Notes under the pieces: generated by a model
Told to the model about the DNA's origin: nothing
What the model saw: only the letters and a program-made list of their open reading frames with translations
Database searches by the model: none
DNA from: Cycas panzhihuaensis
Taxonomy: Eukaryota; Plantae; Cycadophyta
Length of the DNA stretch: 64,000 nucleotides
Direction: 5' to 3'
NCBI GenBank assembly: GCA_023213395.1
Contig: CM041465.1
Coordinates: 147,443,741-147,507,740 of the forward strand
Translations under genes and position numbers: made by a program
Shown here: positions 5,416 to 33,364 of the stretch, in pieces
How the letters are laid out: every line of letters starts with the position of its first letter
Numbering within the stretch: the first letter of the stretch is position 1

Positions 5416-5544
5416 TGTAGGAATGAGTGGATAGGAGTAGGAGACATGTCATAAAGCGCATGTGAAAAGTGCACAAGAAATGACAATACGACAAATGACT
5501 CGCAACTCTCCAAATCTCATTAAGAAAATATGCAAGGTACAAAT
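5416..5544 (-). repeat. 5' LTR of element A, PBS-proximal (U5) part, interrupted by the Athila-like insertion
   Basis: Matches 1883-2011; ends in TSD CAAAT. Confidence 0.93.
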
Positions 5545-6429
5545 TGTTGACTTATAGATTTCACACCCCTTATGAGATCAATACACTTGTCAAGGTTACA
5601 CAGGTTATAGTCTGGTTTAGGACACAGTCAACATCATCATCCACATAGTTCACATAGATTTATTAACATTTCCACATGATTACAACACAATGGCACATAG
5701 CAGTACAAAGATCAACACATATTCCACATTCAATCTTTGCAAACACAGAGAATCCAGAATTTCCATGCAACTCTTATTTTATTAAGCAATAAGTTCTTTT
5801 ACACAAGGTGCTGGAATGCATTCCCTATGCATTCCAGCCTCATACATTCACTCTGTCACATGCGTACCCAGGAGGTACCCATCAAAATACACGGCTTAGG
5901 TTGTTGTCATACGTACTGGTCTCCATACCAATGCGTACTGGAATACTTGGCTCTCACCCTTGAGAGTATACCATAGGATTGAATCACTTGGCTCTCACCC
6001 TAACCGAATGGTCCTTAGGAAGCTTCATAAATATGCTCCTTTGGTGTCCTTTGGCTGAAGGGTTATGACTGTCTATCATAACCATAACTTTTCAGTCAAG
6101 CGTACCTCTTCCTAACCATTGGTTAATTTTCTTAATTGACTATCTTATCTCAGTGCATGCGTGCATGCGTGCGTGCGACATCATCCTAGGCTTCCTTCTG
6201 TCTAGTCTTCTCGTGCGTACCATTTATGTTTGCTTGCATTCTGCCTAGAGGTACGTATCTATGTTGCGTACCTTTACCAAGTACGCACCTGTCATACGTA
6301 CCCAGAATGATGAACTCTTCACTTCTTGCTACATGCGTACCTTCGTATGGTCCGTACCTGCACAATCCAAGGATACCCAGTCTCTCTCTGGTCTGCCCAT
6401 AGTCCAGCCTGTCACAATATGCTCCAACA
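5545..6429 (-). repeat. 3' LTR of the Athila-like element
   Basis: 885 bp, aligns end to end with 15194-16066. Confidence 0.95.
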
Positions 6430-6512
6430 TCTATCCCGGGTCAACATGAAGGGTTTGAGCATCCTTGTTCAACAAAATTTCAAAATTCGAGGTTTTCCTC
6501 CTCCTCCCCTTC

Positions 6513-7865
6513 TCAAGGCTGCTCCTGTGGCCGCTGTCCTGTAGCCAGAATTTCTTCATTAATTTGGGTTAGTGTGGCAATTATTGCATCTTTTTCTTTA
6601 AGTTTTTCCTTAAGGGCTGCTATTTCTGCTTTGTATGCTTCCTCCATTTCCATAATTAACTGGATGATTTGACTTGATTTATTATCCAGTGGGGGTGGTG
6701 CTGATGTCTCTTCCGTTTCCATTACGGGCGGAAAGTCTTCCCATTCTTCCAAAGAATGTTCTACTTCTTCTGCTTCTATTGGTTCTTCCTCATCCTTCTT
6801 TCTTTTGCTACTCTTCCTTATGGTTTGCTTAGCCCAATGAGGAATGGGTGTCCCAAGGGTTTGTTGTAACCATTTGAGAACTTTATTCATTTGCTTTTGG
6901 ACCCTCTTTTTTAATTCCTGATTTTGTGTCGTATCCGAAAATTCAGTCACCCACCTTTTAATTAAGGGTTCCTTTGGAGAAGTAGTTGTTTTTATCAATT
7001 GTACATTTGGACATTGATAAAACAGAATAGCTAACAACAATGAAGGATGACGAAAAGGATAAATCATTATCTCCACGAATCTCTGCGCATGTTGTTATGC
7101 GCGAGAATTGACCAATCCATTTTCTCTCCATCCTGAATCTTTAGTAGTATTGGCATCATTCCCCCTGGAATATATGTGTATTTCCTCTTTGATAAAAACC
7201 TGGAATTAACGACTTTTGCTATCCACTGCAATCGGATATCTTTTATGTCTGCCACACGGATTTCTCTTGAAGTCAGTTGTGTATTTTCTTGGCAGAATTC
7301 TTTTAACCATAGCTCACGGTCCACTTCCGATCGCTTGGTTGCCGCGGGTACTTCCCCTTCGTTGGGAAGTCCTGTTATCAAATGCACAATCTCTGCATCT
7401 AACTTAATTTTGCTCATATCCTTTTTTAATTGTGCTAAGATGCTTTCCATAATTTCTGGGTCATAATACATGGGGTTACAATATATGTACTCTCCCCAAG
7501 CAGTTTGCTTGATCTTGGTCTGAATTGAGAAGGTAAAGCTTCGAGGTCTTTCCTTAATTTAGATAGAAAAGTCTCCTGACAACCTATTGTCCTCATGATG
7601 GCTATGGGATTCCAAAGAGAAAACTGAAATAACTTGGAATTATAGATACGAACCCTACATGCGTACCTTTGCTGGTATTGTCACTGTTTTCTGGAATTAT
7701 AGCTGCTGATTTGAAGCTGGATTTCATCCTTCTGTCTCCCTGGATCGCAAGGGTTTCCCTCGGCTGCTTGCTGTTGAGAATCCGAGCGGAATGGTCCTTG
7801 ATTTCCTGTTGTGTTTCGCGCAGGAATGCTTGCAGGTACGTAATATATACTTTTGTCTTATTCAA
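6513..7865 (-). pseudogene. 3' extra ORF downstream of integrase (plant-mobile-domain / Athila ORF2-like region plus coiled-coil tail), broken into three pieces
   Basis: Sense-strand ORFs 7602-7865, 7067-7471 (IVHLITGLPNEG...IQDGEKMDWSIL) and 6513-7076 (acidic stretch, then heptad-like EEAYKAEIAALKEKLKEKDAIIATL). Family assignment is by motif recall only. Confidence 0.6.
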
Positions 7866-7939
7866 CTATTTTCTTCTATGCGTACTTCGGCTACATACTT
7901 TTTCAAGTACGCATAGTGTAAACCGATTAACTTGTCCAC

Positions 7940-8180
7940 TTTTTAACTGTGTGTACCCCGCAGCGTACTTTTCTGGTATGTATAATGTATTTTGGCCTAT
8001 TTTACACAGTGTGTACCAGATAGCGTACTTTTCTCGGTATGCAAAGTGTATTTTGCCTTATTTTATACAGTGCGTACCAGATAGCATACTTTTCTATATG
8101 TATAATGTATTTTGACTTGTTTTACACAGTGCATACCTAGTAACATACTTTTCCTGGTACGTATAGTGTATTTTGTTGGT
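7940..8180. repeat. About four copies of a 60-bp tandem repeat between integrase and the extra ORF
   Basis: Unit approx. TTTACACAGTGTGTACCAGATAGCGTACTTTTCTGGTATGTATAATGTATTTTGnCyTAT. Confidence 0.85.
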
Positions 8181-8399
8181 ATGTATGTGAAAAAATCAGA
8201 TTTTTTGATAGAATTTTTTTCTTATTGCTTATGTATATGGTATGAGTTACAATTGTTTTTCCTTGTTTTTTTAATTTTTCTTTTTGTATTTTTGTTTCCA
8301 TACTGAACTAGATCACATTCTGGTATCAAGGCAATTCGATTTGCCTCAACTTCATGCAACACGCTATGGTACAACCAGTTGATCCGGCTGGTAAGCTAG

Positions 8400-9500
8400 T
8401 CTATTGGATGTACGGTTTCAACCGGATACCATTCACTTGAGTTGGTGGCAATGGCCCATCAATTTACCGTAGTTGCACTGATCCATTCTCGAAGATTTTC
8501 TTTGCGATGTAAGGTCCTAACCATCGCATCTTGAGTTTGCTGGGGTGCATTTTGAACTTACTGTCGTAGAGCAACACTTGGTCACCTTCTTTAAATTGAG
8601 GTTTGCGTAAATGTCGATCATGCCACGCTTTTTGTTGTTTGTTTTCTATACTTTGCAACCATTTTGCCATATATCGTTTCTCTTCTAATCGCACCAATTC
8701 TTCCAATCGTTGTCGTAAGGATTGAAAGTCGTCTAATCGACACTGCATGGCGGTTCTTAGGCTTAGTATCTCAAACTTTGTCGGAAGAATGGCCTTTGTT
8801 CCGTAGACGAGCTGGAATGGAGTCTGTCCAGTTGACCTTTTATAAGTTGTTCTAAATGCCCATAACACGGATGGCAGTTTCTTGGCCCAATCAGATCTGC
8901 CAACGTCACATATTTTTCTTAAGCAGTTTTCAATTATTTTGTTTGAACTTTCTACTTGCCCATTTGCCCTTGGGTAGTATGGTCTAGACTTCCGATGGCT
9001 TATCATAAAGGCCGATGTCAATATCTCTATAGTTTGATTCAGAAAATGGGCACCTTGGTCACTCACAATCTCCAGAGGGCATCCAAAACGTGTAATAACC
9101 ATTTCGTATAGCAATCGGGCCGTACTTTCCACATCTGCTTTTCTTAAGGCTCTTGCTTCTACCCACTTAGTCATGTAATCCGTTGCCACTAGGATATATC
9201 GAGCTTTAGATTGTCGGGCGGTTGGTTTAATTGGTCCAACGAAGTCGAGTCCCCATTTCTCGAATGGTGCCAGAGGTAGAATGGGATGTAGGGGTTGGAA
9301 ATCTTGCCGATTAGGTTTCCCAACCCATTGACAATAGTCGCAGGGTTGAATCCATCTTCTTACGTCTTCGAACATGGATGCCCACTAGAATCCGGACATC
9401 AAGATTTTCCTCCATGTGGCTAATTTACCCATGTGTCCACCCGCTACCCCTTCATGTGCTTGGGACATAATCTGGCTAGTCTCGTGTGGCCGGACGCATC
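8400..9500 (-). pseudogene. Integrase of the Athila-like element
   Basis: HHCC zinc finger (AHEGVAGGH...CDYCQ), WGLDFVGP, IVSDQGAHF, NGQVESSNK catalytic motifs, GPY motif; main ORF 8464-9375. Confidence 0.95.
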
Positions 9501-9689
9501 GCCGCAACACTTCATCTGGTCCCAGTTTATATAATTCTTCGTTTATTAATTGATACGGTTCTGCTTTTCTGACAAAATTCCGCCATTCCGTACGGTCCAA
9601 TTCTATCGGCACTTCCCCAGTCACTAAGTACTCTGGTATTCCCTTATACCAGTCCGTTGGAACTGCCTCTACGCTGAACAATGCTGCAT

Positions 9690-11130
9690 CTGTTGTATTC
9701 CCTTTCCCAGGTTTCACGATGGTTTTAAAAGAAAACTCCTGAAATAGCAGTAGCCATCTACTGATTTGCCCTCTCATTATTGGTTTGTTTACCAGATACA
9801 TCAATGCTTGATGGTCCACAAAGAACAAGAATGGATTTGCTACTAAATAGTGTCGAAACTTCTGCAATGCATACACCATCCCGAGCGCTTCTCTTTACAT
9901 GCGTGGTATAATTACATTACGCCTTTGTGAGTTTCTGACTTGCGAAGTATATCGGATAGTCCATCTTGTCATCACTAGGTTGGGCCAATACGCATCCAAT
10001 AGCGTATTGTGAAGCATCCACATGTACATGGAAGGTTTTCTTCCAATCAGGAAATCGTAGTATGGGTGCTGATATGATGGCTCGTTTTAATGCTTCGAAT
10101 GCTTGCTGTTGTTCTTCCATCCATTCCCATTCAAAATTCTTTTTTAACAATTCCTCCAGGGGTACCGATATGTATGCATATCCCCTGATGAATTTTCTAT
10201 AATATCTGGTTAAACCCAAGAAACATTTCAATTGTCTCCTCGTGAGTGGTGTAGGAAAGTGTAAAATTGCAGATACTTTGGCTTGATCTGTCAGCAATCC
10301 CTCCTTGCTGATGATGTGTCCCAATAGATTTCCGAAGGGTACCAAAAAGGTACATTTCTCTGGGTTTAAACACAACTTATTCTCTCGACATGTCTGTAAC
10401 ATTTCCCTCAAGCTTTCCATATGATCTTTCATCAATCTGTATAACATCCAATCGTCTAAGAATACTTCCACTCTTTTCCCAATAAATTTCCGAAATATGT
10501 TGATCATGATCCTTTGGAATGTGGCCGGTGCATTCATAAGACCGAATGGCATTACTTTGTAGGTGTAAGTTCCCCATTCTGTCATGAATGTGGTCTTTGC
10601 TTGGTCCTCTGGGGCAATCTGCACTTGATTGTACCCACTAAATCCATGGGTGAAGGAATATATCTCATTTCCTTCCACCGCTTCCAAAATGTCATTTGTA
10701 AATGGTAACGGAAAGGGATCCTTCTTCGGTACCTTATTCGGTTGTCTGTAATCCACATAGACACGTATTTTCCCATTCTTTTTGGGAACTACTACTATAG
10801 GGCTCACCCAGTCACTGTAGTCAATCTCGTAGATGTATCCTGCTTCCAGCATCTTATCTAACTCTGCTTTCACTTTTTCTTTATACCTAGGATTCATGCG
10901 GTATGGTCATTTGCTTCCTTTGGTTTTGCTTCCTCTACCAAATCAATGTGATGCATTCCTATCTCTAGGGGAATACCTTTTAGGTCTTTATATGACCACG
11001 CGAATATGTCACGGAACTCCTCGAACAATTGCTGAGCCTTCGCTACTGTTTGATTATCCCAATAGTTTCTGATTCGTATCAGTTTGGGATCCTCTTCTTT
11101 CTTGACATTAATTTCCATAGTTTTTAATTT
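9690..11130 (-). pseudogene. Reverse transcriptase and RNase H of the Athila-like element
   Basis: WVSPIVVVPKKNGKIRVYVDYR, MPFGLMNAPATFQR, VFLDD; RNase H VHVDASQYAIG and VDHQAL; ORFs 9917-10897, 9385-9879, 10894-11427. Confidence 0.95.
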
Positions 11131-11349
11131 GGTTACTTCGATATCCTCCTTGTTTCCGGTTTTGTGCCTAGGGGTATCTTCTATTTTTCTTTCCCTAATG
11201 TTAACTTCCGTAAATTCTGCAGGGTAATTCAGGATTTCTTCTTCCTCACCATATGCTGATTCTTCTTCCTCCTTATTTATAATTCCTTGTTCTAAATCCA
11301 TGCTCATTCTTCTAATATTCTTCAAGATTCTATCTATATTTTTGTCTTT

Positions 11350-11810
11350 TGATGCATGCATAAAAGTTTTTATAAAGGATTCCTTCAAATTTCCCCAAGT
11401 CACATCCAGGCTTTGTTCCCTTGCCAAGAACCAATCCTTTGCTACCTGTCCTAGAGTGTGATAAAAATAGTTATGCCAGATTTTCTTGGGTATACTTAGG
11501 GATGTCCACTTTTGTTTACATTTCTGTAGGTGTTTGCTAGGGTTTTGGCCTACATGGAATAACAGAATGTCTAAATGTTTGGGATGGTCGAATCGAAGTC
11601 TAAACGTTGCTTGTAACTCCTTCCAATTTTGGAGAGTGGCCTGGTGGGCTAAGTAAGGTAAGTACTAGGTCTTTTTGCCACTGATTTTTATCCTAATTTC
11701 CATGCTCCATCCAGTATTCAATGCAGCGAGTTAAATGAGTAGTCCCATATAACTGTTTTCCATAGAAATGCTTGACATGATTCCTAATATAAGTTTCAAA
11801 GTTCGTTTCC
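11350..11810 (-). pseudogene. Two tandem Gag capsid-NTD-like domains inside Pol, between protease and RT
   Basis: Hand translation: HFYGKQLYGTTHLTRCIEYWMEHG...QWQKDLVLTL/.ATLQNWKELQATFRLRF, then LLFHVGQNPSKHLQKCKQKWTSLSIPKKIWHNYFYHTLGQVAKDWFLAREQSLDVTWGNLKESFIKTF; fits the retrotransposon-gag pattern F..TL.g.A..W.......W..Lk..F...F. Confidence 0.75.
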
Positions 11811-12499
11811 TATGGGATAATTACCCTATTGCCTAGACCAGAGTCTCTAAAAGTATTTACCGCCGATTCTCCTTCCATTCCCTTGGTTTTGGCGCCAATC
11901 GTTGGAAGGGACCAATTGTTGGGTGGGTATACCTCTAAAGAAGATGAGGAAGGAATGTTACTTGCTTCCCCGGGTTGTAATAAAGGGGGGAATAGGGAAT
12001 CTACCTTAGGACCCACGCCTGAGGTAGAAAGGAGGTTAAGATTACTACTAGCTACTATAGGACTATGAAAAATACTAAGTCTACTAGGGGGGTTTTGGTC
12101 TAGGTTTACGTTATCCACTAAGCTATCATTAGTCATTATATATTCGAAAGAACCTGAATTAGCATTAATGTTTCCAATTACACATGTAGACAATAAGTTA
12201 CATCTATGAGAGGAATAATTTACTTCATAGGTGTCTTGCAACCAATAATCCACAAATCTCATTCCATTTTCGTCGTCTGAAGAGTTATATATTTCCCCAA
12301 AATAAGTTGGTTCGGCTTCTTGATAATCGATTAGCTTGGTAAGCTCCTCAGTCGTATGGTAAAGATTCTCTTCATCGTGGAAAGAGGCTATTGTTTCACT
12401 TACAACAGTCGTACTGGATCCTTCATCCGGTATCATCTCAATGGAGTTTCTTCCTAACATTGGTAATAGCACTTTGTTTGCATCATCTGATAAAGTGAA

Positions 12500-12800
12500 G
12501 GTCACATTCTTCTAGTTTTGGAGACACTGGGTCTTGTATAGCCAGGGCCTCCCCAATAATGCTAGATAGGGTGTTGCACCCTTTTCTGTTTCTACGATTG
12601 TAAAGTCAAATTTTACGACGATCCCTGCTACATCCATTTTAATTCGTTGGCCAATTTCAACGAATATGTTGCTGCCTCCAGTTTTGGGCTTCCTAATTTC
12701 CGTCATGTCGAAGTAGGTAGTACATTTACGGCTGTGCCCCCATTGACAATCACTTTCGGGAATGTTTCTCCCAATACCATCATGGTCACCATGGGATCTA
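12500..12800 (-). pseudogene. Aspartic protease of the Athila-like element (catalytic D mutated to N)
   Basis: KVIVNGGTAVNVL (DGG motif with D>N) and YLALLGRPWL. Confidence 0.85.
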
Positions 12801-13203
12801 TGTCGAATAATGGCATCACTTTCTTTAAACTCTTGGTGATTCCTCGTTGTACTATCCCTCCTTTAATCCAATCAATTACTTGGCATAGAGGAATAGTTAA
12901 TCACAACTGCTTTACCAGATTTTCCATCAGCAACAACATTCTTGGAATGTCTTCGGCTGGTAATCCTTTGAATAGTTCCTCCATCTGTACCATTTGAGGT
13001 TGTATTTTCGGCTCTTCTAGTACCTTATCTTTCTCCTTTTGCTTATTCTTTCTTACATATACATATTTAGTTTCTGGCTTCCCCATTGGTAATGCACTCT
13101 CTTCTTGAGTTAAGTCTTCTAACACTTGTTTCGCTTGTTTAAATCGATTTGTTTCTGTTTGTGGATTCAGATACACTTCGTCTTCTTTCTCCTTTCGTTT
13201 CTT

Positions 13204-15053
13204 TTAGAGTTTTACAGTTTTACTCTCTGGTATGATTGTCATGAGATTGGTAGCTTTAGCTTTTCCCTTACAATCTTCTGTTTTGTGCTCACTTGGTCCA
13301 TAGTTGTTACATACGAATGGTTTTTGTTCGTATTCCCGTTTGGTTGGGCATTCAGATTTCCAATGCCCGAATTGTAAGCATATGAGACATCTTCCCATTG
13401 GTTGTTTCTTCCTCGAGGGGTCCTGTGTACTCCTCGTTGTATATATATTTCGAGGTGAGTTGCCTCCCCTTCCCCTACCTCGTCCTCTGTATGATTTTCC
13501 TCTTGGGTTGTAGAAACAATCTTTTGTCATATGCATATCCACATCGCATATGTGGCAGCATTTGTCCCTTTGGTGCAATGCACTATTCTTTGGATTGAGT
13601 TCACATTCTTTAGTCGTGTGTGAACTTTCTTCACAGATGTGGCACCATTTTTCCACTCTGCCTTCGTGATCATTTTTCTTCTTTGTTGCTTCCTCTTCTC
13701 TGATATTTCTTATTTTTAGTCTTGCCACTTCCTTTCTTAGGGCTTCTAATTCTGATTCCTCTTCTGCTACTCCCACCTGGCAGAAGGGTCGATTATACTG
13801 GTGTTGTTTGATTTCCTTGATCTCTTCTTGTAATCTCAATAGGAGGGAGTCATTTCCTCCAGCCTGCGCATCCATCTCCATCTCAAAGTCAAGTGCTAAA
13901 TCTTGGGCATTCTTAAATGACTTTAGTGGATGTGCATGCATCATAGCTCTCAGTTTCTCATTCAGTCCTCTGACAAAATAATTTTTCATATTATGGTGCA
14001 TTCTGGTTTCATTGATCATACTGGCCACAATGATTTTCATCCTACTGATATAAGTTAATACTGATTCTCCGGGCCTTTGTTTAATTTCCCTAAGGGCAAT
14101 TTCCACCGCTTCATTGCTTCAAAATTTTTGAAATCTTTCCTCGAAGGATTTCTTTATTTTTGCCCATGAATCTTTCTTATCCAACTCTTTGTACCAGGCC
14201 AATGGTACTCCCCTTAATGTCTGTAGATCGGCTTTTATCTCGTCTTAAATGCTGTAATCTTCTTCACGTCGATCAGATTTTGCAAGAGATATACATGTTC
14301 GGCTGCATCTGAAGTGTCGTTGAAAATCAACTTCCCAAAATCTCTGTAATCATCTATCCTAGGAGATTGTACCGGTGTCCCACCTAGTGGTGATTCTTCC
14401 CCTTTCTCCTCCTCACTGGATTCTATCTCCTTCCCTTCACTCTTCTCTTTTGGAGATGTGCTTGGAGTGCTTACTGCAATATTATCTTTCCCAAATAATG
14501 GGTTCTTAAATGGGGTTTTAAGATGTATAGGTTCTAACACACCTGGCACTTGTATTGTTAACGGTGTCACCGTTATGTATGATTGATCAGACCCCCTGTC
14601 TGATGGATCCTCAAAAAGCTGCCTTGTTAGCTTGTTTTCCCAATATGCCGAGGGGCCTTCCTCCACCTTCTTCTCACTATCACTTAGGTCCTTTAGAGTG
14701 TCTTCCACAGGTATACTTTCCTCTTTTGTTAAAGTGTCTTTATGTTCTTTATCCACCTTTGGTGTTTCTTCATATTCTGGGCTAAACAGGTCATCCTTGA
14801 TTGGGGCTGGTGTTAGTACCATTTGTTCGCCATTGTTTGCCTCTCCTTGTTCTTGAGGTGTCTGGGCTCCACTTGCCTCAGATTCTTCAACGGACTGTCC
14901 TTTAGTCTCGTTATTCTGCGAACTTAATGTCCTTGCCCTTCTCAGTTTTGACTCTTTTGACCATCGTAATGCCCTATGTTTGCTTGTTTCTTTCCCTTTA
15001 GGTGAAGTATCCTTTTGTGGATCTTCCACCTTTGAAGGCCTTTTAGGTGGCAT
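13204..15053 (-). pseudogene. Gag of the Athila-like element: long acidic/basic N-terminus, capsid, four CCHC knuckles
   Basis: ORFs 14235-15053 and 13204-14106; capsid TLRGVPLAWY...SWAKIKKSFEERF and IKQRPGESVLTY; knuckles CHICEESSHTTKEC, CHICDVDMHMTKDC, CLICLQFGHWKSEC, CNNYGPSEHKTEDC. Confidence 0.9.
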
Positions 15054-15179
15054 TGGAAGGTCCCCTGGCTTTCGAAGGCTTAGTTACGGCCTACCATCAC
15101 GACGACAGCCAGGGTCCTCTGTCCTTTACACATTCCTCCTTTTGAAACTCCTGGGCCCTATCCCTCCTCAATGGACGTA

Positions 15180-15192
15180 GGCAACAGAACCA
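15180..15192 (-). promoter_or_regulatory. Primer-binding site, tRNA-Glu type
   Basis: TGGTTCTGTTGCC one base after the 5' LTR; pairs with the recalled plant tRNA-Glu 3' end GGCAACGGAACCA over 13 nt with one G:U. Confidence 0.7.
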
Positions 15193-15193
15193 A

Positions 15194-16066
15194 TGTTGAC
15201 TTATAGATTTCACACCCCTTATGAGATCAATACACTTGTCAAGGTTACACAGGTTATAGTCTAGTTTAGGACATAATCAACATCATCATCCACATAGTTC
15301 ACAGTTTATTAACATTTCCACATGATTACTGACAATGGCTGCAGTAGTACAAAGATTAGCACATATTCCACATTCAATCTTTGCAAACACAGAGAACCCA
15401 CAATTTCCACACAACTCTTATTTTATTAAGCAATAAGTTCTTTTACACAAGGTGCTAGAATGCATTCCCTGTGCATTCTAGCCTCATACATTCACTCTAT
15501 CACATGCGTACCCAGAGGTACCCATCAAAATACACGGCTTAGGCTGTTGTCATGCGTACTGGTCTCAGTACCAATGCGTACTGGAATACTTGGCTCTCAC
15601 CCTTGAGAGTATACCATAGGATTGAATCACTCGGCTCTCACCCTAACCGAATGGTCCTTGGGAAGCCTCATAAATATGCTCCTTTGGTGTCCTTTGGCTG
15701 AAGGGTTATGACTATCTATCATAACCGTACCTTTTCAGTCAAGCGTACCTCTTCCTAACCATTGGTTAGTTCCCTTAATTGACTGTTTTATCAGTGCGTG
15801 CGTGCATGCGTCGTCGGCGTCATCGAACTTCCCTACATCTAGTTTTCTTGTGCGTACCATTTATGTTTGCTTGCGTTCTGTCTAGAGGTACGTATCTGTG
15901 TTGTGTACCTTTACCAGGTACGCACCTATCATACATACCCAGAATGCTGTACTCTTCACTTCTTACTGCATGCGTACCTTTGTACAGTCCGTACCTGCAC
16001 AATCCAAGGATACCCAGCCTCTCTCTGGTCTACCCATAGCCCAGCGTGTCACAATATGCTCCAACA
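15194..16066 (-). repeat. 5' LTR of the Athila-like element
   Basis: 873 bp, followed by TSD CAAAT. Confidence 0.95.
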
Positions 16067-16309
16067 CAAATACATATTTATAACTTTACACTAAGTCTAA
16101 ACATAGGAGGTAGTTCAACAACTCCCATGATTTTTGGTGTGCTCAAACTACCTCATTAATAGTTGATCATCTTTGACTTCTAGAACCTTTGACTAAGAAT
16201 CTTCTCTCACTAGAATATTCTCATCAAGAATATTCTATGTGAGCAATTATTCTAATGAAATGAAATGAACTTAAATGGACATGTAATGAGAATGTACATG
16301 ATTCCAACA
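16067..16309 (-). repeat. Remainder of the 5' LTR of element A (starts with the duplicated CAAAT)
   Basis: Matches 2007-2249; followed by TSD GATAT. Confidence 0.93.
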
Positions 16310-21051: not shown

Positions 21052-24000
21052 TAAAGGGCCTTGTTACCATTTGAAGCAATATGATATTACAGACAGCAGC
21101 TCTTGCACAATAAATCGAAGATGAGGCAAGCAAAATAAAGGACAATTGCTTTAAAAGGACAATTGAAGTCTAATAACAAGGCAACAATACTTATCTTCCA
21201 AAAGGCTGAAAAAATACTGATAAGTAGGATGAGGATAAATGCTGGAATAACTCTTACTAGTGCTACCCTCTTCGAGGCGAGGTTTCCTCCAAAAGTGCAG
21301 CCTTAAAGGCGATAGAGCAACAACCCTAAGGCTGAGATTATTGCAGTCCAAACTCAGTTATGAGATGCCTAGGAATGGGGTCAAATGACCCTATATATAG
21401 GCGATAAAATAGACATGAAAAACTCACCATCTTTAAGATGGAAGTTGGCCAAAAGGAATGTTAGAAGTTAGCCAGAATGGGAGTTACTCTTAATAGTATT
21501 AAGTCAGCCAGATTATAGGCTTTCAAGTCGGCCAAATTGGGGGTCAATTTGTTCACAACATGTCCTTTCCCTCGAAACCCTAATTTGCCCTCAAAGCATG
21601 GGTGAATTTGGGTGGCGTTGTATCCATTCTTTTGATTCCCATGTTGCATCATTTAAATCTAAAGTTTTCCACTTAGTGAGATGTTCTTTGACCTTTCTAG
21701 ACTGTAATTCTTTTGTTTGTATCTGTAAAAACCCCTATGGTTCAAAGATAATCTTCCCTTCTTCATCTAGCTTAGGGACTATTGTCTGAGGGGTTACCTT
21801 TTCCCCTACCTTCTTCTTAAGGCATGATACATGAAAGACATTATGGGTCCTGCTTCCTGGTGGTAATGCTAGTTGATAGGCCACTTCCCCAATTTTCCTG
21901 ATAACTTCATAAAGTTTGAAGAATCGAGGTGCCAATTTATGTTTGTTTGTTTGTTTCATTGATGATTGCTTGTAAGGTTGGAGTCTTAGAAAGACCCAGT
22001 CTCCTACTATGAAGCTTCTTTCAGATCTTTTGGTGTCAGCTTGTTGTTTCATTCTGTTCCTCATTATATTCAAGTTATCTTTTAAAATCCTCATTGTTTG
22101 CTTCACTTGTTCCTATTGTTCGCATGTTGCTTGTACTTGTGATATTTTTGTTCGCGTGAGTATAAGTGGCTCATACTCCTATAATGCCTAAAAAGGTGTC
22201 ATTTTTTGTTGTCGTATGGTAAGTGGTGTTGTACTGCCATTCAGCCAAATGAAGCCATCTATGCCATTGAGTTTGTTTATCAGAAGAAAAGTTCCTTAAG
22301 TATCCTTCTAGGCATTTGTTGATTGCCTTTGTCTGTCCATCTGATTGTGGGTGGTAGGCTATACTCATATTTAATTTTGTTCTTGCTACTTTGAACAAAT
22401 CTTGCCAAAAATGGCTTGTGAACTTTGGATCCCGATCACTAACTATAATTTTGGGAAGCCCATGTAGATGATATATCTCCTTCATGTATATCTTTGTTAT
22501 TTGACTTGCTTTTGCTATTGATTGTGTGCCCCTAAAATGTGCATATTTAATTAACCTATCTACTACTACAAAGATGGCGTCTTTCCCTTTAGATTATGGG
22601 AGTCTTGTGATAAAGTCCATTGAGATTTCTTCCCCTTTTTGATACGGAATGGGTAACGATTATAGCAGTCCCAGACTTTTTGTGCATTTGCTCTTGCTTA
22701 GTTGCCATGAATCGCATTCAAATACATACTTGAGGACATTTTCTTTCATTCCCTTCCAATAAAAGGAATTTTGTACCTTTCGATATGTTTTGTTTATTCC
22801 TATATGTCTTGTTGTTGGCACCAAGTGGACTTCTTCTAATATGACCACCTTTAATTTAGAAGCCGTTGGGATAAATATCTTCCCTTTCCTTAGAATTAAT
22901 TCTCCTTGTAATTCGAACTTGGAAGACTTCTGGTGCTTAATCTCTTCTAATATCTTCTGCGAAGGTGGATTGATCTTATATTCCTTGATTAATTCTTGAC
23001 CCCAGCTGGGTATGGCTACCGATATTGCTTTAGCGAAACTTCTTTGTTGTTGTCCTCAGGTAGTCTTGAGATAGCATTTGCAATGACATTCTCTTTACCC
23101 TTCTTATATACTATATTGAAATCAAAGGTTTGGAGCTTGCTAACCCATTTTTATTGGTCGTCAAACAGTGTCTTTTGATTCAAGAAATATTTGAGAGTGT
23201 CATGATCCATTCAAACTATAAACTTGTTCCCTAATAAGTACTGCCGCCATTAGTGTGTGGCATGCATGATCGCCAACATTTCTTTGTCATAAATAGGTTT
23301 TAGCTTCTCCCTATTATTTAATTTCCTGCTTTCATAGGCAATTGGTCATTCGTTTTGAATCAGGACTGCCCCTATTCCGAAGTGTCGCATTCTAAAATGA
23401 ACGGTTGTGAGAAATCAGGTGTTGCTAGAACTGGAGTTGTGACCATCATCTTCTTAAGTTCTTCAAAAGCACTTTCTGCTCATGGATTCCATACAAAAGC
23501 GTCCTTTTTTGTAAGGTCCATTAATGGGGGTGCTATGTGGGCATATCCTTTTATGAATTTTCGAAGAAATCCTACTGTTCCTAGGAAACTCCTTACTCCT
23601 GTCATATTTTTTAGTACTGGCCAATTTATGATAACTTGAATCTTCTTCGAATCTATTTTTATTCTTTCTTTTGTGATAATGTGGCCTAAATATTCCAGTT
23701 CTTTTTTCCCAGATGTGCATTTCTTCTGATTTACGTAGAATTGATTGATTTGTAGGATTCATAGTATTGCTTTGATATGGTCTAGATGCTCCTCCCATGT
23801 TTTACTATAGATCAAAATGTTGTCAAAAAACATTAGCACAAATTTTCACAAAAATGGTTTGAGGATTGAATTCATAGTCCTTTGAAAAGTTGTTGGGGCA
23901 TTCATTAGCCCAAATGGCATGACTTTGATCTTAAATAGTCGCTTGTGCGTACGAAAAGTTGTTTTGTATATATTTTTCTCTCTAATGCGAATCTGATAAT

Positions 24001-26309
24001 ATTCTGATCGTAGGTTGATTTTTGTAAAATACCATGCTTCGTGTATTTCGTCTAATAAATCGTCTATCCATGGAATAGGATAACGATTCTTTACTATTAA
24101 TTTGTTCAACCCTCGGTAATCAACACATCCGATATAATCCATCCCTTTTGGGATTGACTACAACCAGTGATGCAAATGGGATTGAACTAGTTGCGATATA
24201 TCCTTGACTTAATAATTCCCTTGTGATTTTTTCAATTTCTCTCTTCAAATGATAAGGATGTCTGTAGGGCCTGATATTTACTGGGGTCGCTCTAGGTACA
24301 AGCTCAATCGAATGCTGACAATCCCATTGCGATGGATCCCTTTGGGTTCTTCAAATACTACTTTGTGCTCATCTATGATCTTTTGCACCTCAGTTGGTAG
24401 GTCTTCTATTGCTATCTTGTAACATGTTAGTATGTATGTAGACGAATTCTTCTTCAATATCTTTTCCATGCGATGCAAGGATATCAATTATACTGGAGGT
24501 GTGGTCAATGCTTGTAATATGTATTTGTGCCCTTTCTGACAGAAGCACATGAATAAGGACATATAGTTGGTAACTATATTTCCCAAGGTCTGTAACCACT
24601 GAATTCCTAAGACTGCGTCTACTCCTCCTATAGGCATCACGAACATACATGTATTTACTGAATAGTCTCCTATTTGAAATTTAACCTTCTAACAGTAACC
24701 TCCATAAGGAGTAGTTTTCCTATTTGCGATGGATACTTGAAATGTATTTAAAGGTTGTATTTTTAATCCTAGATTTTGTGTTATGGCCTTGTTAATGAAG
24801 TTGTGAGTGTTGTTGCTATCCACAAGTACTGCAACTAGAGCTCCTTTGATCATCCCTTAGAATCTAAGGGTTTGAGGTGTAATGCTTTGTCTTGTTATGG
24901 CTTGTAGCGAAATTTGGGCATTCTCAGTATCAACTTCTAAAAGTTCATCTACTTGTGCTTCCTCTTCTTAGATCTGATTTACTTCTTCTTGTTCTTCGTC
25001 TGGTATTTCCACTTCGTCATTATTGATTATAAACACCTTCTTCATTGGGCATTAATGTTCTTTATTCCACTTCCCTTCACATTTGAAGTAGGTCCCCTTT
25101 TTGAGATGTTTGACTCTGCTTGTTTCATTTGTATCTTTTATTGCTACTAGTGGGTCTACTTTTGTGCCTGATTTGGCCCAATTTGGATTCGATCCCTGTT
25201 GCTGTTATGATTTAGTTTTGCGTGTATAGATGGGTATGTTCTCTCTAAATTTTGCTTCTACGTTCCTATCATATCGGATTGCCTCATGAATGTTTGAGGG
25301 TTTCATATTCTTAATGCGAATTTGATTGTCCCCTTTAATCTATTGATGTAAGTTTCTATGATGTATTCAGCTGGTATTCTTTTTGGTATTAAACATTGAA
25401 GCATCTGGAATTGCTCGATGTATTCTTAGGATGTTCTGTTTCGTTGTAATCTTGTTAATTGACTGAAGTAGTCGGTATTCCAAGAATCTTTGTACTATTT
25501 TATTAGTCATGCCTTTAGATAGTCCCATGATTCTGGGTGGCCCAGATTGTTCTTTCGCCACCAATAAAACCATTCTAACGCCCTTCCATACAAGTGTAGA
25601 GATGTTCTTATCTGATAGTTCATACACTTGGAAGTATGTTTCCATTTATAATAACCAACTCTGAATGTTCCTTGTTCTTTTTGGATCAAAATTTTCTAAT
25701 GTAAATTTGGTTCCTCTAAGACCATGATCTAATTGGGAACTCTTTTGATTCCATCATTCGTAGGTAAAACCCTTGAATTTCCTTAAATTCCTTTGTTGTT
25801 CATTCCCTTGGTTATCTTGATTTGGGAATTCTTGGTTGATTTCTTCCATGTCTTGGTGTTTCTCTACTACTGGCTCTCCCTCTTGTAGGTCCAATCTCCT
25901 GTTTAAAGTTTTGAACGAAGCCTAGAGGCTTTTCATGGAAATGATAAGCTTGGATGACAAATGGGATAATACTTCTTCAATCCTACTTCCTTCTTCTTTT
26001 GCTATTGTTGCTTGGTGGTTCACCATATTATTGGAGACAAGACTTTGTCTTGATTTTAATTCTATCCCTTGGGGGGAGAAAAAATTGGGCTAAATTTTTA
26101 TACATTATCTTCGAATTCCCGCTTTGAAATGAAGCTCTGATACCGCTTGAAGCGCCTTGTTACCACTTGAAGCAATCTGATATTATAGACAGTAACTCTT
26201 GCACAATAAATTAAAGATGAGGCAAGCAAAATAAAGGAGAATCGCTTCAAAAGGACAGTTGAAGTCTAATAACAAGGTAGCAATACTTATTTTCCAAAAG
26301 GCTGAAAAT
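21052..26309 (-). mobile_element. Chromoviral Ty3/Gypsy element B, decayed, 5' LTR truncated
   Basis: 3' LTR about 21052-21560; 5' LTR 26148-26309 (matches the first 160 bp); PBS complement GCTCTGATACC 26134-26144; PPT GGGAAAGGACA; gag, PR, RT (YPIPWIDDLLDE, MPFGLMNAPTTFQR), RH, INT (IVSDRDPKF, QSDGQT) and chromodomain (LTKWKTLDLNDATWE). Confidence 0.9.
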
Positions 26310-29300
26310 CCTGCCATTATATTTTTATTTTTTATAAAGTTTAAAAATTTTAGGTTATTAAAATTAGCATATTCAAAGAGTATTATATTTTTGATAAAGG
26401 TCTCTAACCTAAAGTTTGTCATTTTATTTTTTTTAATCATTTTTAAACCATTTTAGGCCTATTTTTTAATCAGTTTTAGGCAATTTTTTAGTTTTTTAAG
26501 GCATTTTTTTTGTTTTTACTGCTTAAAACATATAATTTTTAATTTTTAATCACAATAAATCTTTTAAAAAATTCAAAACATAGAAAAGATAAATACCTGA
26601 ATTAACCACCCTTATACCATCCTTGCAAAAGCAATGGTTAGGACCCTTAAAGCTACCACTTTGCACACACTAGTGGTCTTTTTCGAATTTTGCGAATTTT
26701 AAAAGAAGCCATTAACTATTAGGTGTATTTAGTGCCAGGCTGAGGTGTTATACCCCAAAACCTTGGAGTTTGGAGACCATGCTATACTCAAAGGGGGTGA
26801 GTGCCTTGGTTGTTAAGTGTGCCCTTAGACAAGGATCTATCGTTCAAGTTGTAAATCTGACGCAAGTGGGTCAACGATGTCGGGGGGGCAGTCGAGCCTT
26901 CTGTAGAACCCGCATACCTTCAGGTATATTGGGTCCCCAAGCTACCACTTGTGAGCAGGTACACCATCCGACAGAATTGTCTCAACTACCAAGGGCTATT
27001 AGGATTAGAGACGCTGAGACATAGATCCTAGTTGAGCATACATTTTCAAGTAGATAGGACACATATTTCAGACATCATGGCACTTATTATGGTTACAAGT
27101 AGTACAATTAAACATTTTGGCAGTGATAATTTCTTGGCTTAGAAGAAACACTTCAAGAACATATTGATAATAAACAAACTTTGGCCTTATGTTTCTAAAA
27201 AAATTCCTATGCCAGTTGCCACCTAATGATCCTCAGAATCTCATTCCTCATGATCATGAGGTTGTAGTTGACTTTCAAGAGTTTGATGAAGTTGCCCTTT
27301 CCTTTTTACACCTATTTTGTGAAGATAATGTCGACCAAAACATTGAACTAGCCCCTACCTCTGTTGATGCTTGAAATATCATTTGTGTGCTCCATGAGAG
27401 GAAGGACAATGCCAGGGCAATGATGCTCAAAGCCCAGCTTTACTCTATTTCATTTGCAGGATCTATAACAACTCATTTGTCCTAAATCAAAGTGATTAAG
27501 AATTAGTTGACAGTGATGGGTCAACCAATAGATGACAATGATCTTGTATCCTACATAGTTAATGTTTTGCCACTTGGAAATAATTCCCTCATATCCAATT
27601 TGTCACATATAAATTGACTTGCCACTATTGACTTCAACACATTTGAGGGTCTACTGCTGCAAGAAGAATGCATTCAAAACCAATCTGGGAATCTAGGTGC
27701 TTCCTCTTCTATACCAACATTTACAACCTATCATAGAGGAAGACAACAACATCCATAATTGTCCCATCAATTTAGTTCAATTAATTTGAACTAGCAACCT
27801 TATAATAGCCATATCAGCCACATTAGCCTTGACCACCATACAATCCTCAAGTTGTTTGTTACTATTGTGGCAAACTTGGACATGTAGCACCTGATTATAG
27901 AAAAAAGAGAGTTGACCTTTAACAACAATAGTCTTAGAACCACCTTGTCATGTGGGGTAATCAGAATCATGGACACATAAATTATCAAGGACCACAAAGG
28001 CAAAATCAATCTAATTATCAGGGACTAAGGATTCAAAATCAAAATGCTCCTCAAATGAACCAGCAAAATAAGAATCACGACCAAAGACAGAATCAAGGAG
28101 GCCACATGGTTGACTCTCAAAATTTTTTCTTTGCTACTTTATCAACTCAAGATTTTAACATATCTCAGTTGATAGATTCAGGTGCCTCTTAGCATATGAC
28201 TGATTCAAAAGAACTTCTCACTGATACAAGACCAATTTAAGATCAATCAATCATTTTTGGAGATGATGTTGTCTAGAGGTCACCAAGATTGGCAATGTTC
28301 CTATTTCGTTGAAAATTTGAGATACTCCACATCATCTCAACAATGTTCTCTATGTACCTAGCATGATACGTAACCTATTATCTATTAACTAGATAAATAA
28401 GCAAAACTTTGATGTTTTGTTTAGTCATCTTGAAAAATGCCTGATTATAGATCTAAATGGCAACCTAATTGCCTCAAGATATGAAGATCAGGGACTATAC
28501 AAGCTTGATGCAGTAACTAGACCTTTGATCCATTCATATGAGTTTGGTTCTTGTAGCAATTTAGTTTCCACTTCTAATCCTTCTACTTCAACTTCAGATT
28601 CAGATGAGCAATTTGCTTCAAAAGCATTTGTTTCTCCTAGACTCCCAAAAGACCAGTTATCGCATCAACACCTAGATCACTTGAACATGAACAACCTTCA
28701 TTTGCTTTATAAACTGAATATGGTACATGGTATATTGAATATAAAGCAAATTAAATGTATTTGTGAGGCCTATGTTATGGGCAAATATCATCAAGCTTTA
28801 TTTAGGTTAGATGGAAGAGTCAAGTGTGTCAAGGAACCTTTAGGCCTAGTACATTCAGATATCTGTGGGCCCATGTCACAAACATCCTTTGGAGGCTGCC
28901 ATTATTTGATTACATTCACTGATGATTGTTCTAGAAAAGTATGGGTCTATTTTCTGATGCAGAAATCAGAAGCCTTTAATAAGTTTAAAGAATCTAAGCA
29001 TGGCATTGAACTTGAATCTAGAAAGTCACTCAAAATCCTTCGTTGTGATAACGGAGGTGAATATACATCAAATGAATTCACCAAATTCTATAAGGATAAT
29101 GGCATCAAACAACAATTTTCTGCCCCATATACACCTCAGTAAAATGAAGTTGTCGAGAAAATGAATTGGACCTTAGTCAGCAAAGGCAAAGCCATGCTTG
29201 CCACAAAAAAATTGGGACTTCAATTTTGGGATGAAGCCCTTCATACAACCACTTATCTCACAAACATAATTCCAACCAAGGCAGTGTTGAGCTTAACTCC

Positions 29301-31782
29301 TGAGGAGGCTTGGTTAGGTCAAAAGCCCACAGTCTCACAATTGCGCACTTTTAGTTGTACAACATACATGCTCATACCAAAAGTACAAAGGAAAAAGCTA
29401 GATGATAAAAGCAGGAAATGCGTCTTTATTGGTTATCAACCTAGCTATAAAGCATACAAATTATATGATCCTGCCACCAAGCAAATGTATACATCTCAGG
29501 ATGTTATTTTTTAGAAGAGAACACAGATTTGGATATCACACAAATCTTATTCTTTGACGATCAATCTGAAAATGCACATGTTGCTCCTCCTACTCCACAA
29601 AATGTTCCTACAGAACAAATGCCTCCTGCATTAACATACACTCTTGGCACATCATCTATACCACCTGCCTCTATATCTACATCTACTCCAATCAATCTTT
29701 CAAAAGACATCCAAGATGAGGCTACTTTAAAGCGGCTGCCCAAATGGTATATGGAGACAATCTCTTCTACTTCTTCACCACCTAAACAAGCTAAGAGGTA
29801 GTCAAAATATAGGTCATCCACCAACTTCGCCTTAATGGCAGAAGTGTTGTCAACCTCTAAACCAACTACTTTTGAAAGAAGCTATTGTAGATCAAAAGTG
29901 GCAAGCAATTATGACTAAAGAGATGGATTCCATCCTACAAAATGATACTTGGGAGCTAGTTGAGTTACCTAAAGGTAAGAAACCTATTTATTGTAGATGG
30001 ATTTATAAAACAAAATTTCATGCAGATGGGTCCATTAAGCGACATAAGGCACATTTGGTTGCCAAAGGTTTCAAACAGGTTGAAGGTGTTGACTATGACA
30101 CATTTGCACCAATAGCCAGCATGACCACTATCAAGCTTGTTTTGGCACTTGGAGCTCAATTCAATTGGCTTGTTTATCAGACAAATGTAAAAGGCACCTT
30201 CTCGAATGGCAATTTGCAGGAGGAGATGTATATAAATCAGCCTCCCAACTTTCTTGTTTGAGGAAAGGAACACTTAGTTTGTAAACTAAAAAAGGCCTTG
30301 TATGGCCTTAAGCAATCACCTCGTGCATGGTATGTGAAAATTGATGAATATTTTCAAAAGCATGGACTCATTCACTTATTTTCAGATTCAAATTTATATA
30401 TCAGAATTCATAATGGTTTGATCACTTTGGTTGTACTTTACATTAATGACTTGTTGATAATTGGTAATGACACAGAGTGGATTATACATCTCCAAGGAGA
30501 ACTAAATAATAACTTTGAAATGACTATCCTCAGGTTGCTTCACTACTTTCTTGGCATGGAAGTCTAGTAGGAGCCAGGGCATATCTTCCTCTCACAGTCG
30601 AAATATGGAAAATAGATTCTTTCAGAATTCAGGATGGAAGAATGCAGATCGTCGCCAACTCCTATGGAGACAGGTCTGAATTTGAACATTGATGAGCATG
30701 GAAACCCTGTGGATCCTACTTTGTATAGACAACTTGTGGGGAAATTAATTTACCTCACTCATACTCAACCTAACATTGCATATACCATTAGGATTTGCTC
30801 AAGGTTCATGACACAAACCAAGACGTCACATTGGAAAGTAGCAATGAGGATCCTGAGATAACTTTGGGGTATTCTTCAACTTGGACTTGATTACTGTCAT
30901 GTGGATAATCCTTTATTGATAGGTTATACAGATGCAGATTGGGTTGAATGTAAAGATAGTCGTAGATCAACCTTAGGGTACTATTTGGACTTGGGTTTTG
31001 CTTCAGTTTCATGGTGTTGCAAAAAGTAGCGTAATGTTACTCTTATCTTCAACTAAATTTGAGTATAAAGCCATTGTTAGTGTAGTTGTTGAGGCTATCT
31101 AGCTTAGAAGGATCCTTGAAAAGCTTGGAATCACTCAAACACAAGCTACACTACTATTTTTTGACAATCAGAGTGTGCTTAAATTGACCAAGAATCTTGT
31201 GGTCGATGCTAGGATAAAACAGATTGAGGTTCACGATCACTTCATCAGGAAGCATGTACAAGATGGTGAAACAGATTTGATTAACAAGCCTACCGATGAT
31301 CAGATAACAGATATCTTCACAAAGGCACTCTCTCGCAATAAATTTGAAAGGTTCCAGCTTGGCCTCAATGTCAAAATTAATGAACTCATCATTAAGGAAG
31401 GCTGATAGAAGTATTAATAATTGAATTCATTAATTCATTGATGATTAATTGTATCACACTTGTAATATATTGTAAATGATTTACATGAGGATCTTATTGT
31501 CATAAATTAGTTAAGTCACAACTTATGTTGTGAACTTAGGCGTGTGTGGGTATTTTTGCTCTCAATGTTAAAATATTGTTAATGTGGTTTAATCATGCAA
31601 GGTGCCAACTGTCACCTTGCATGATCTTACTCTTATTATTCTATATGTTCATTGTAATTGCCTCTTTTGTTGCATATGCGAGGCTTTTGTATGTAATGTA
31701 CATCTTGTATTGTATCTACGTGAAATTAATGCAATTGTGATATATTTTAGAGCTTGTGACCAATTCCTCTCTCGTTATATCG
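26310..31782 (+). mobile_element. Ty1/Copia element D lacking a 5' LTR; decayed gag-pol 27077-31405; 3' LTR about 31403-31782
   Basis: Gag start MALIMVTSSTIKHFGSDNFLA*KK; PR LIDSGAS; INT LVHSDICGP, LRCDNGGEY; RT YGLKQSPRAWY, LYINDLL; RH ITDIFTKAL; PPT AAGGAAGGC then TGATA...TATCG. Confidence 0.9.
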
Positions 31783-31849
31783 AATGTTTATTGAATGCTT
31801 TATTGGAAGTATTATGCATGAGAGTGAGTTTTGAACTTTAGTCTAAACC

Positions 31850-32990
31850 AGGCTTGATCCTCACTCTTTCAATTTTAAAGAACTTCTTGAATGCTTACCT
31901 CAATTTTGGGGTGAAAGTGGAAAAGCAGAAGAACACAAAGGAATGTATTAAGCTTTTTGAAAATAATGAAACTGATTGGTTGTATATGTTTCCCTTTTCT
32001 TTGAATGGTCAAGCTTTAGCTTATTATGAGATACAAAAAACGCAGTTTTGTAACTGGGAAAGAATGGCAAGGACATTTTCAATCTGATTCCAAAAACAAA
32101 ACAATAGGCTACCTGTATTTACAATCAATCCTAAACAACACATTCGGAATTGTGTAAAGATTTGAGAACAAGATCAAAGTCCGAAGTGGGAATGGGTACA
32201 TCAATTACCCATATCCCTGACAAGTACCAGTTTGATCTAGTATTCAGCTGGGGAAAGGCAAAATGAGGGAAATAGGAAATAGGAGACAGTAGCAAGGAAC
32301 TTTGTACAAACGTTTTCCTTCTACAGTCCATGCAAGTCGACTCATAAAATTTTACTAGCCTTCAAAGAAAATTTGAAAATCCTATAAAGGACTATTGCCA
32401 AATAGAAAAGATAAAAAGAACAGGAATTGGAACTCAATCCGTTAAGGGAAGAGGGGGGTGAGGTACAATTGAAGGCTTTCCCCCCATCCTATTCCAAATT
32501 GGAATATGGACAACAGGAATTCAATCAAGCCCCAACCTATGAATTACAGCCTGATGGGAAGGCAGTACAAGGGAAGGATCTCCAATTAAAAAAAATTAAT
32601 ATTGGAATTGAGGCAGAACATAAATTGGTCACCATAGGTAACTATTAGGACCAGGAGACAATTTAGCAAGAAACAACTCTTGTTATGGAGTATAAAGATG
32701 TTTTTGCATGGTCCTATAAGGACTTGAAGGGGATTTCCTTGAAACTTTGAGAACATAAAATTGAGTTGTTGGAAAATGCAAAGCCAGTTAGACAGAGACC
32801 ATATAGAATGAACCTAAAATACAAAGAGTAAGTCAAGAATGAGTTAGATAAGTTATTGGCGGCAGGATATATATTTGAAGTAGAGAACAATGAATGGGTT
32901 AGCCCAGTAGTGGTGGTGCCTAAGAAGAATGGGAAGTTAAGAGTCTGTGTGGACTACAGAGCTTTGAATAAAGCCATCAAAAGAGATAAC
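31850..32990 (+). pseudogene. Fragment of a second, diverged Athila-like Pol: two capsid-NTD-like domains followed by the RT N-terminus
   Basis: DWLYMFPFSLNGQALAYY...NWERMARTFSI*F; NPKQHIRNCVKI*EQ...WVHQLPISL...K*ETVARNFVQTF; then LKKINIG, YKDVFAWSYKDLKG and WVSPVVVVPKKNGKLRVCVDYR, homologous to 10700-11130. Confidence 0.85.
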
Positions 32991-33364
32991 ATTCTTCATC
33001 TGCAACACAATCTATATCATGATACCATTCTTCATCTGCAACACAATCTTATTAGGGTATATGGGACAAACAACTCCCATTTTATACCATGATCAAGGTA
33101 GAACTGATTTTAAGGCAATCTCGTCATACACCTTTCGATTATCACTTCGATTTCATTACAAACACACAAGTGAATCTACAGCAGACTTGTTTATATATGC
33201 ACAAATGTTGATCCAACATTCGACAGGCTATAAACCTCATGTTACCATTAGTTCAACCACCCAAAGTATAATGGTCCACCATGAATTGATAACCACTTAT
33301 ACAAACAAGCCAATAAATTGCAATTCTGTACACTTCTCCACACACAACTAATGTAAAAACACTA

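Follow-up and report, generated by a model that had tools for sequence, protein, structure and literature searches.

In the textbook retroelement, Pol is laid out as protease (PR), reverse transcriptase (RT), RNase H (RH), and integrase (INT). To our knowledge, the accessory inserts of Pol are either enzymes or chromatin readers (an extra RNase H, a dUTPase, or a chromodomain). The junction (J) peptide that lies between PR and RT in Ty3 is said to be short and dispensable and is not known to be capsid-like. Among plant elements, TatI and TatII carry an extra RNase H at the PR-RT junction (PMC6317226, PMC4408406), and Ogre elements are described as having an intron between PR and RT (cited in PMC4408406). 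In Ty1, p22/p18 is a truncated Gag that serves as a restriction factor (PMC4551931). Full-text searches, and readings that took in the Tat papers, a survey of plant LTR retrotransposons, and other literature, turned up no account of a capsid-like domain at the PR-RT junction; an earlier reading of the locus described here, made from the letters alone (the sequence-only reading), had likewise known of none.

The locus lies in a 64,000-nucleotide stretch of Cycas panzhihuaensis DNA (contig CM041465.1), here called the window, and belongs to a plant Ty3/gypsy LTR retrotransposon with two capsid N-lobe-like units in tandem, D1 and D2, between PR and RT. Like the Ty3 J peptide, which is said to be released from the same position of Gag3-Pol3, this D1-D2 module is a nonenzymatic stretch, but it differs from J in consisting of two folded, conserved lobes. 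Like the insert of TatI/TatII elements of club-mosses and gymnosperms (PMC6317226, PMC4408406), it is a lineage-marking accessory domain at the PR-RT junction of non-chromovirus plant elements; the TatI/TatII insert is an archaeal-type RNase H, whereas the insert here is capsid-like. Pfam found no RNase H family either in the spacer between PR and D1 or in two ORFs downstream of INT (6516-7471). P0318, an intact relative in which a gag knuckle, PR, the spacer, D1, D2, and the start of RT lie in a single ORF of 699 amino acids, matched no Pfam family over its whole length at E ≤ 0.01, and so no RNase H match was reported for its PR-D1 spacer. The additional aRH of Tat elements (REXdb OTA|Tat) was not found, and a degenerate aRH in the spacer was rejected as a reading.

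With Ogre elements (cited in PMC4408406), the locus shares additional sequence between PR and RT and the stop codons found in many copies. Unlike Ogre, P0318 is open from PR through D1-D2 to the start of RT with no stop; an Ogre-type intron was rejected for this reason, and it follows that the stops of the window copy reflect decay rather than an intron. As with Ty1 p22/p18, a capsid-derived fragment is encoded by the element besides full-length Gag; p22 comes from an internal gag transcript and represents the C-terminal half of Gag, whereas the module resembles the N-lobe and forms a distinct segment of Pol, in frame with the rest. Finally, D1 and D2 have the signature, the profile match, and the four-helix lobe in common with the Gag N-lobe (PF03732; Arc, dArc1, PNMA2), but, unlike an ordinary Gag N-lobe, they stand in tandem without a C-lobe or a CCHC nucleocapsid, in Pol downstream of the protease, alongside a normal Gag.

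The element spans positions 5545-16066 of the window on the minus strand. When the two LTR regions were compared by blastn, they formed a pair of 885 bp with 91.5% identity. They are bracketed by a perfect 5-bp repeat, ATTTG (16067-16071 and 5540-5544), and because identical ATTTG sequences on both flanks mark a target-site duplication, all of the sequence between the LTRs must have entered the genome as one unit. One base past the 5' LTR, at 15192, lies the PBS-like sequence TGGTTCTGTTGCC, which, as a lead only, resembles with three mismatches the tRNA-Asp PBS that, together with an env-like ORF, marks the Athila lineage. ORFs, translations, and Pfam matches gave the minus-strand order gag, PR, disordered spacer, D1, D2, acidic linker, RT, RH, INT (Table 1), and the minus-strand translation thus confirmed the order of PR, spacer, two capsid-like units, and RT given by the sequence-only reading. 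The paired TG..CA LTRs with their target-site duplication and the gag-PR-RT-RNase H-INT order are those of a Ty3/gypsy element. The C-terminal chromodomain on INT that defines chromoviruses is absent: besides rve, the INT ORF gave only two weak, subthreshold Pfam matches, to DDE_Tnp_IS240 and TrmI-like_N.

Table 1. Features of the module-bearing element and of a second, truncated copy (window coordinates)
Feature	Position	Strand	Observations
5' LTR	15194..16066	-	TG start, CA end
gag	13204/13207..15053	-	ORFs, translations; acidic N-terminal part, capsid N-lobe motif (14122-14244), Retrotrans_gag C-terminal half, 3-4 CCHC knuckles
Aspartic protease	12515..12900	-	Two overlapping frames; stop-free pieces; ends LLGRPWL
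Ser/Pro/acidic spacer	11813..12511	-	Stop-free over 233 codons
D1, first capsid N-lobe-like unit	about 11590..11809	-	Stop-free pieces; comparison with relatives
D2, second capsid N-lobe-like unit, with one trailing helix	11305..11559	-	Pfam PF03732; intact in window copy
Acidic linker and pre-RT segment	10897..11304	-	FAWSYKDLKGI motif, conserved
Reverse transcriptase	9920..10897	-	Pfam RVT_1 (E = 6.9e-24), RT_RNaseH_2
RNase H	9388-9879	-	Pfam RT_RNaseH
Integrase	8467-9375	-	Pfam Integrase_H2C2, rve
3' LTR	5545..6429	-	TG start, CA end; flank ATTTG at 5540-5544
Copy B, divergent and truncated, same layout	31842..33092	+	D1 31842-32084; D2 pieces 32088-32384; linker 32415-32786; RT start 32808-33092

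The two ORFs downstream of INT (6516-7471, minus strand) are successive, are 134 and 187 amino acids long, and lie between INT and the 3' LTR, the position occupied by extra ORFs in Athila/Tat-type elements; neither matched a Pfam family significantly. Just downstream of INT, in the internal noncoding part, a unit of ~60 bp is repeated three times in tandem (7977-8175), the repeats being 75 to 81% alike.

The window copy is a dead element, with stops or frameshifts in Gag, PR, D1, and the start of RT. The sequence-only reading had taken Gag to be complete at 13204-15053; it matches the zinc-knuckle families and positions 52 to 97 of the Retrotrans_gag profile in Pfam, but a frameshift near 14240 and a stop codon at 14119-14121 interrupt it. 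PR has one frameshift and a stop at 12512-14, and its active-site motif is VNGG, not VDGG. Residues 204 to 392 of the intact P0318 mapped by tblastn onto 12753-12179 of the window. The acidic, Ser/Pro-rich spacer of ~230 amino acids (11810-12505) in the earlier reading corresponds to the 233-codon spacer of Table 1; it matched no Pfam family, is ~120 residues longer than that of P0318, and aligns with P0318 only in its first part. The acidic linker and pre-RT part is the target of most database matches, and the start of RT is frameshifted relative to the pre-RT piece.

D1 and D2 share the motif H-x3-C-x3-W ... W-x3-F ... W(Y/F) ... W-x6-F-x3-F. D2 lies inside a 256-codon stop-free piece (10897-11664) and in the same frame as ORF 10894-11427, as the sequence-only reading had placed it. 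It matched PF03732 (Retrotrans_gag) with an E value of 2.1e-5 and 25.1 bits, above the curated gathering cutoff of 24.1, over residues 66 to 122 (window 11299-11469) and profile positions 2 to 61 of 97, with an additional, weaker match to Ty3_capsid, and it scored 161 bits with the module HMM. D1 of the window copy is interrupted by an in-frame stop (11693-11695) and a frameshift near 11660 and is apparently shortened. Its C-terminal part is in register with the D1 of relatives in the alignment, and its N-terminal part was matched by eye to the Ginkgo proteins P0021 and P0155. By itself, window D1 gave no Pfam score because the stop and the frameshift leave pieces that are too short. The sequence-only reading had also stated that the units lack a capsid (CA) C-terminal domain and knuckles. 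This holds: no CA C-lobe follows D2, the Pfam match ending at profile position 61, and instead of a CCHC knuckle, there is one helix and the acidic linker after D2 in the window copy, P0318, and P0336. The module thus does not contain the full set of parts of a complete Gag (N-lobe, C-lobe, and CCHC nucleocapsid).

The relationship of the units to Gag was examined by profile comparison. By hhalign, D2 matched five genuine Gags on their N-lobe segment with a probability of 96.9% and an E value of 1.3e-10 over 82 columns, D1 matched the Gag N-lobe segment with an E value of 1e-4, and D1 matched D2 with an E value of 1.5e-4, with the N-lobe motif in register in all three. A D2-derived profile matched Ginkgo D1 and also the true Gag N-lobe of the long polyproteins P0057, P0014, and P0008. 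Retrotrans_gag was matched by 10 of 35 module family members; the Ginkgo protein P0155 scored 40.0 bits, in two stretches that cover D1 and D2, and P0336 scored 30.4 bits at residues 117 to 167, upstream of RVT_1, RNase H, and Integrase_H2C2. A sequence-profile search of the PDB returned no meaningful match for the module. The capsid likeness proposed by the sequence-only reading stood in comparison with other Gags; against the element's own Gag N-lobe piece (14122-14244), the module HMM gave an E value of only 0.04. The solid part of the deduced Gag link thus comes from profile comparison with other Gags. Chance motif similarity was rejected as an explanation of the units.

Structure prediction pointed in the same direction. 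An AlphaFold2 model of P0158, built with a 40-row alignment, had a pLDDT of 77 (D2, >90; D1, 73 to 84) and a pTM of 0.69, and in it each unit is a four-helix bundle, with one further helix after D2. The best 11 Foldseek matches in the PDB were capsid domains of dArc1, dArc2, Arc, and PNMA2, at E values that were weak (0.02 to 1) because the lobes are small. The Arc N-lobe alone was superimposed on the model with a TM score of 0.65 to 0.80 and an rmsd of 2.2 to 2.9 Å. In a search of viral folds (BFVD), retroviral Gag and caulimovirid coat protein appeared only among the noise, with no significant match. Taken together, Pfam, hhalign, and AlphaFold/Foldseek support the identification of D1 and D2 as Gag capsid N-lobe-like domains.

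The same arrangement was found outside the dead copy. The window holds a second, divergent copy on the plus strand (copy B), which by tblastn is 26% identical to the module element (E = 1.7e-18), with 64.5% identity in the RT start, and is colinear with residues 428 to 699 of P0318; no PR or gag of copy B was detectable elsewhere in the window. Directly upstream of copy B lies a Ty1/copia element (27950-31405, plus strand) with a gag knuckle region and integrase, RT, and RNase H ORFs. Single ORFs carried the module in P0318, in P0336 (931 amino acids: D1, D2, RT, RNase H, and the N terminus of integrase), and in P0163 (the end of PR, the spacer, D1, and D2). D2 continued into the N terminus of RT in P0173, P0009, P0086, and P0246, and the Ginkgo biloba gene models P0021 and P0155 contained D1 and D2. 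Probing with P0318 showed colinearity in both window copies and in metagenome loci L001, L002/L003, and L004. A further locus, L005, is a 1-kb metagenome contig on which a module fragment is flanked by inverted RT fragments, and it is rearranged or chimeric. In the Ginkgo protein P0156 (Gb_26725), a long, low-complexity stretch rich in Asn, Gly, and Gln precedes an acidic run and the start of D1; therefore, the spacer upstream of the module differs completely between families.

Broader searches returned mostly short sequences. A search of 1.84 billion protein representatives with D2 and the linker gave 275 matches, mostly to the RT linker, with no long module-bearing protein among them, and an alignment query added ~30 short metagenome fragments. 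A word-index search with the Ginkgo protein P0021 found three Ginkgo proteins and nothing more, and a scan of viral contigs with P0318 found no match. Named relatives from the RT search were all from ferns and liverworts, with identities of ≤55%. In one unrelated element (P0006, 554 amino acids), the protease is followed by the pre-RT linker segment four times in tandem, another odd expansion of the PR-RT junction.

In an RT tree, the seven module-bearing rows (the module element of the window [window A], L001, L002, L004, P0246, P0316, and P0336) formed one clade with an SH-aLRT support, from a quick search, of 99, and all 13 module-free rows fell outside it, including P0150, P0273, P0216, and P0292 and the Riccia proteins P0008 and P0260. 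Module-bearing rows were required to have at least 130 RT residues. A row was counted as module-free if one ORF held the end of PR and RT with only a disordered stretch between them or if at least 200 residues upstream of RT lacked the module. Stops in locus-derived rows were read as X, and the tree was built without L003 (the same family as L002), the rearranged L005, and most of the 120 RT matches. The RT fragment of copy B, at 62 residues too short for its placement to be used, lay inside the module clade in one tree and was unresolved at the base in another. The sister groups include elements of a fern (Adiantum) and of liverworts (Riccia and Marchantia). Four more Ty3/gypsy RT/INT remnants in the window (60137-62531 and 49777-50660 on the plus strand; 35160-37231 and 22168-24124 on the minus strand) are 28 to 38% identical to the element's RT and have no module; three of them served as the outgroup. 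Wherever the PR-RT region of a clade member could be read and enough of its RT was available, the module was present, which shows it to be a mark of this lineage. The proposal of the sequence-only reading that the module is lineage specific, rather than a nested insertion, is borne out by the colinear relatives, the intact ORFs of P0318 and P0336, and this clade.

The sequence of the module has been retained to a degree that can be compared with that of RT. D2 has the signature H-x3-C-x3-W ... W-x3-F-x3-L ... WY-x3-E ... W-x6-F-x3-F-x-F, whose residues were present in 20 to 24 of 25 to 26 relatives, counted over nonredundant sequences with <80% mutual identity, many of them at ~25%. Between two intact families, identity was 71% in D1, 61 to 65% in D2, 33% in the D1-D2 link, and 87% in the RT core. 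The module thus evolves faster than RT, and the constraint on its folded parts, as judged from these identities, is moderate and Gag-like. On the first D2 helix (about 11515-11529 in the window), 23/25 sequences keep a His and 24/25 keep a Cys, at a spacing of four residues, a pair that might have a metal or redox role; genuine Gags have a hydrophobic residue where D2 has the Cys.

The most likely origin of D1-D2 is a duplication that placed the coding sequence of the Gag N-lobe at the PR-RT junction, and the pair has stayed in frame ever since, across families whose identity is now only ~25%. As to what the module does, the sequence-only reading had suggested that it may tether RT-IN, change particle geometry, or act in self-restriction; we tentatively favor, at somewhat less than an even chance, a structural, capsid-interacting role within Pol. 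On this reading, the module would be a nonenzymatic part of Pol, translated together with the shell protein as one Gag-Pol polyprotein, and its two N-lobe-like bundles would bind either the lattice of Gag capsids or a peptide motif in Gag. Such docking might retain the RT-RH-IN precursor, or mature RT, within the particle as it assembles, or fix its place there; alternatively, it might help set the time and place of PR cutting. Against such docking, an element with Gag and Pol in a single ORF already has its own Gag to carry Pol into the particle, and the need for a second tether is not obvious. A related but unlikely possibility is that the module would be a capsid-derived assembly subunit that coassembles with Gag, for example as an inner layer or at particular places in the lattice, and sets the geometry of the particle or the stoichiometry of packaged RT-IN.

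It is likewise improbable, and about equally so, that D1 and D2 form a peptide-binding adaptor that is not a component of the lattice and that recruits a host factor (for import, targeting, or chaperoning) or a polyprotein motif to the RT-IN complex. The best single-domain structural matches were peptide-bound Arc N-lobes (6tq0, 6tno, 6tnq, and 4x3i), and the C-lobe, which makes most capsid dimer contacts, is absent, both of which would suit an adaptor; however, no ligand motif was identified, and conservation centers on buried aromatic residues, as is typical of maintenance of a fold.

We give no better prospects to the idea of a tolerated relic, in which part of gag was duplicated into a permissive, disordered junction and persists there as a functionless spacer. 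Relatives have a long junction that varies and takes other inserts, and in the module-free proteins P0150, P0273, P0216, and P0292, ~150 to 200 disordered residues occupy the same PR-RT site. The faster evolution of the module than of RT and the reported dispensability of the Ty3 junction peptide also fit a relic. Yet a signature of ~14 positions is kept across families at ~25% identity, conservation is higher in the folded units than in the intervening link, and the module is in frame in all of the intact members seen.

Less probable again is an assembly inhibitor, freed by PR or expressed separately, that would cap or poison the lattices of the element's own Gag, as a form of copy number control, or those of competitors, by analogy with Ty1 p22/p18. 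A truncated, capsid-derived protein without a C-lobe or NC follows the general logic of dominant-negative Gag fragments. But in P0318 the module is in one frame with Gag-Pol, so that it would be equimolar with Pol and always present, and the module resembles the N-lobe, unlike Ty1 p22, whose source is the C-terminal half of Gag. One family of the module clade, moreover, comprises at least 137 near-identical protein fragments in a 90%-identity cluster, which does not suggest strong self-restriction.

We regard as similarly doubtful the view that D1-D2 is a full second bilobed capsid protein, with D1 as the N-lobe and D2 as the C-lobe, that forms an inner shell of its own or takes special lattice positions. 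Foldseek alignments of 126 to 156 columns took in D1 as well as D2 and matched them to the two-lobed capsid domains of dArc1, dArc2, Arc, and PNMA2 with probabilities of up to 0.99, and the pTM of the predicted model may point to a defined arrangement of D1 and D2. The rmsd across both lobes, however, was 12 to 15 Å, and D1 and D2 both map to one Gag N-lobe segment (Pfam profile positions 2 to 61); the lobes of Arc-type capsids are similar in fold, so structural alignment cannot tell them apart. Last, a nested gag fragment of another element, a chimera of two elements, or an assembly error, which a window full of nested retroelements and a heavily decayed copy might bring to mind, was rejected as highly improbable, since the element in its entirety lies between the two arms of a perfect target-site duplication, its junctions are found again in copy B, in four metagenome loci, and in unbroken ORFs of other origin, and the module-bearing RTs form a single clade.

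A conserved, duplicated piece of capsid in Pol is a different kind of accessory from the enzymes and chromatin readers, and it offers structural biology a natural capsid derivative made of N-lobes only. It also matters for annotation, in that automated annotators (Pfam architectures or REXdb/DANTE-style schemes) would take a second GAG match between PROT and RT for a nested or chimeric element, and a whole lineage could thus be misclassified or discarded, one that seems to be abundant in at least some land plant genomes. If a subunit of Pol does coassemble with Gag, it would couple the incorporation of the enzymes to the assembly of the shell, a route not described for any retroelement. The module bears, finally, on how the products of Gag and Pol find each other in elements that make a single polyprotein.
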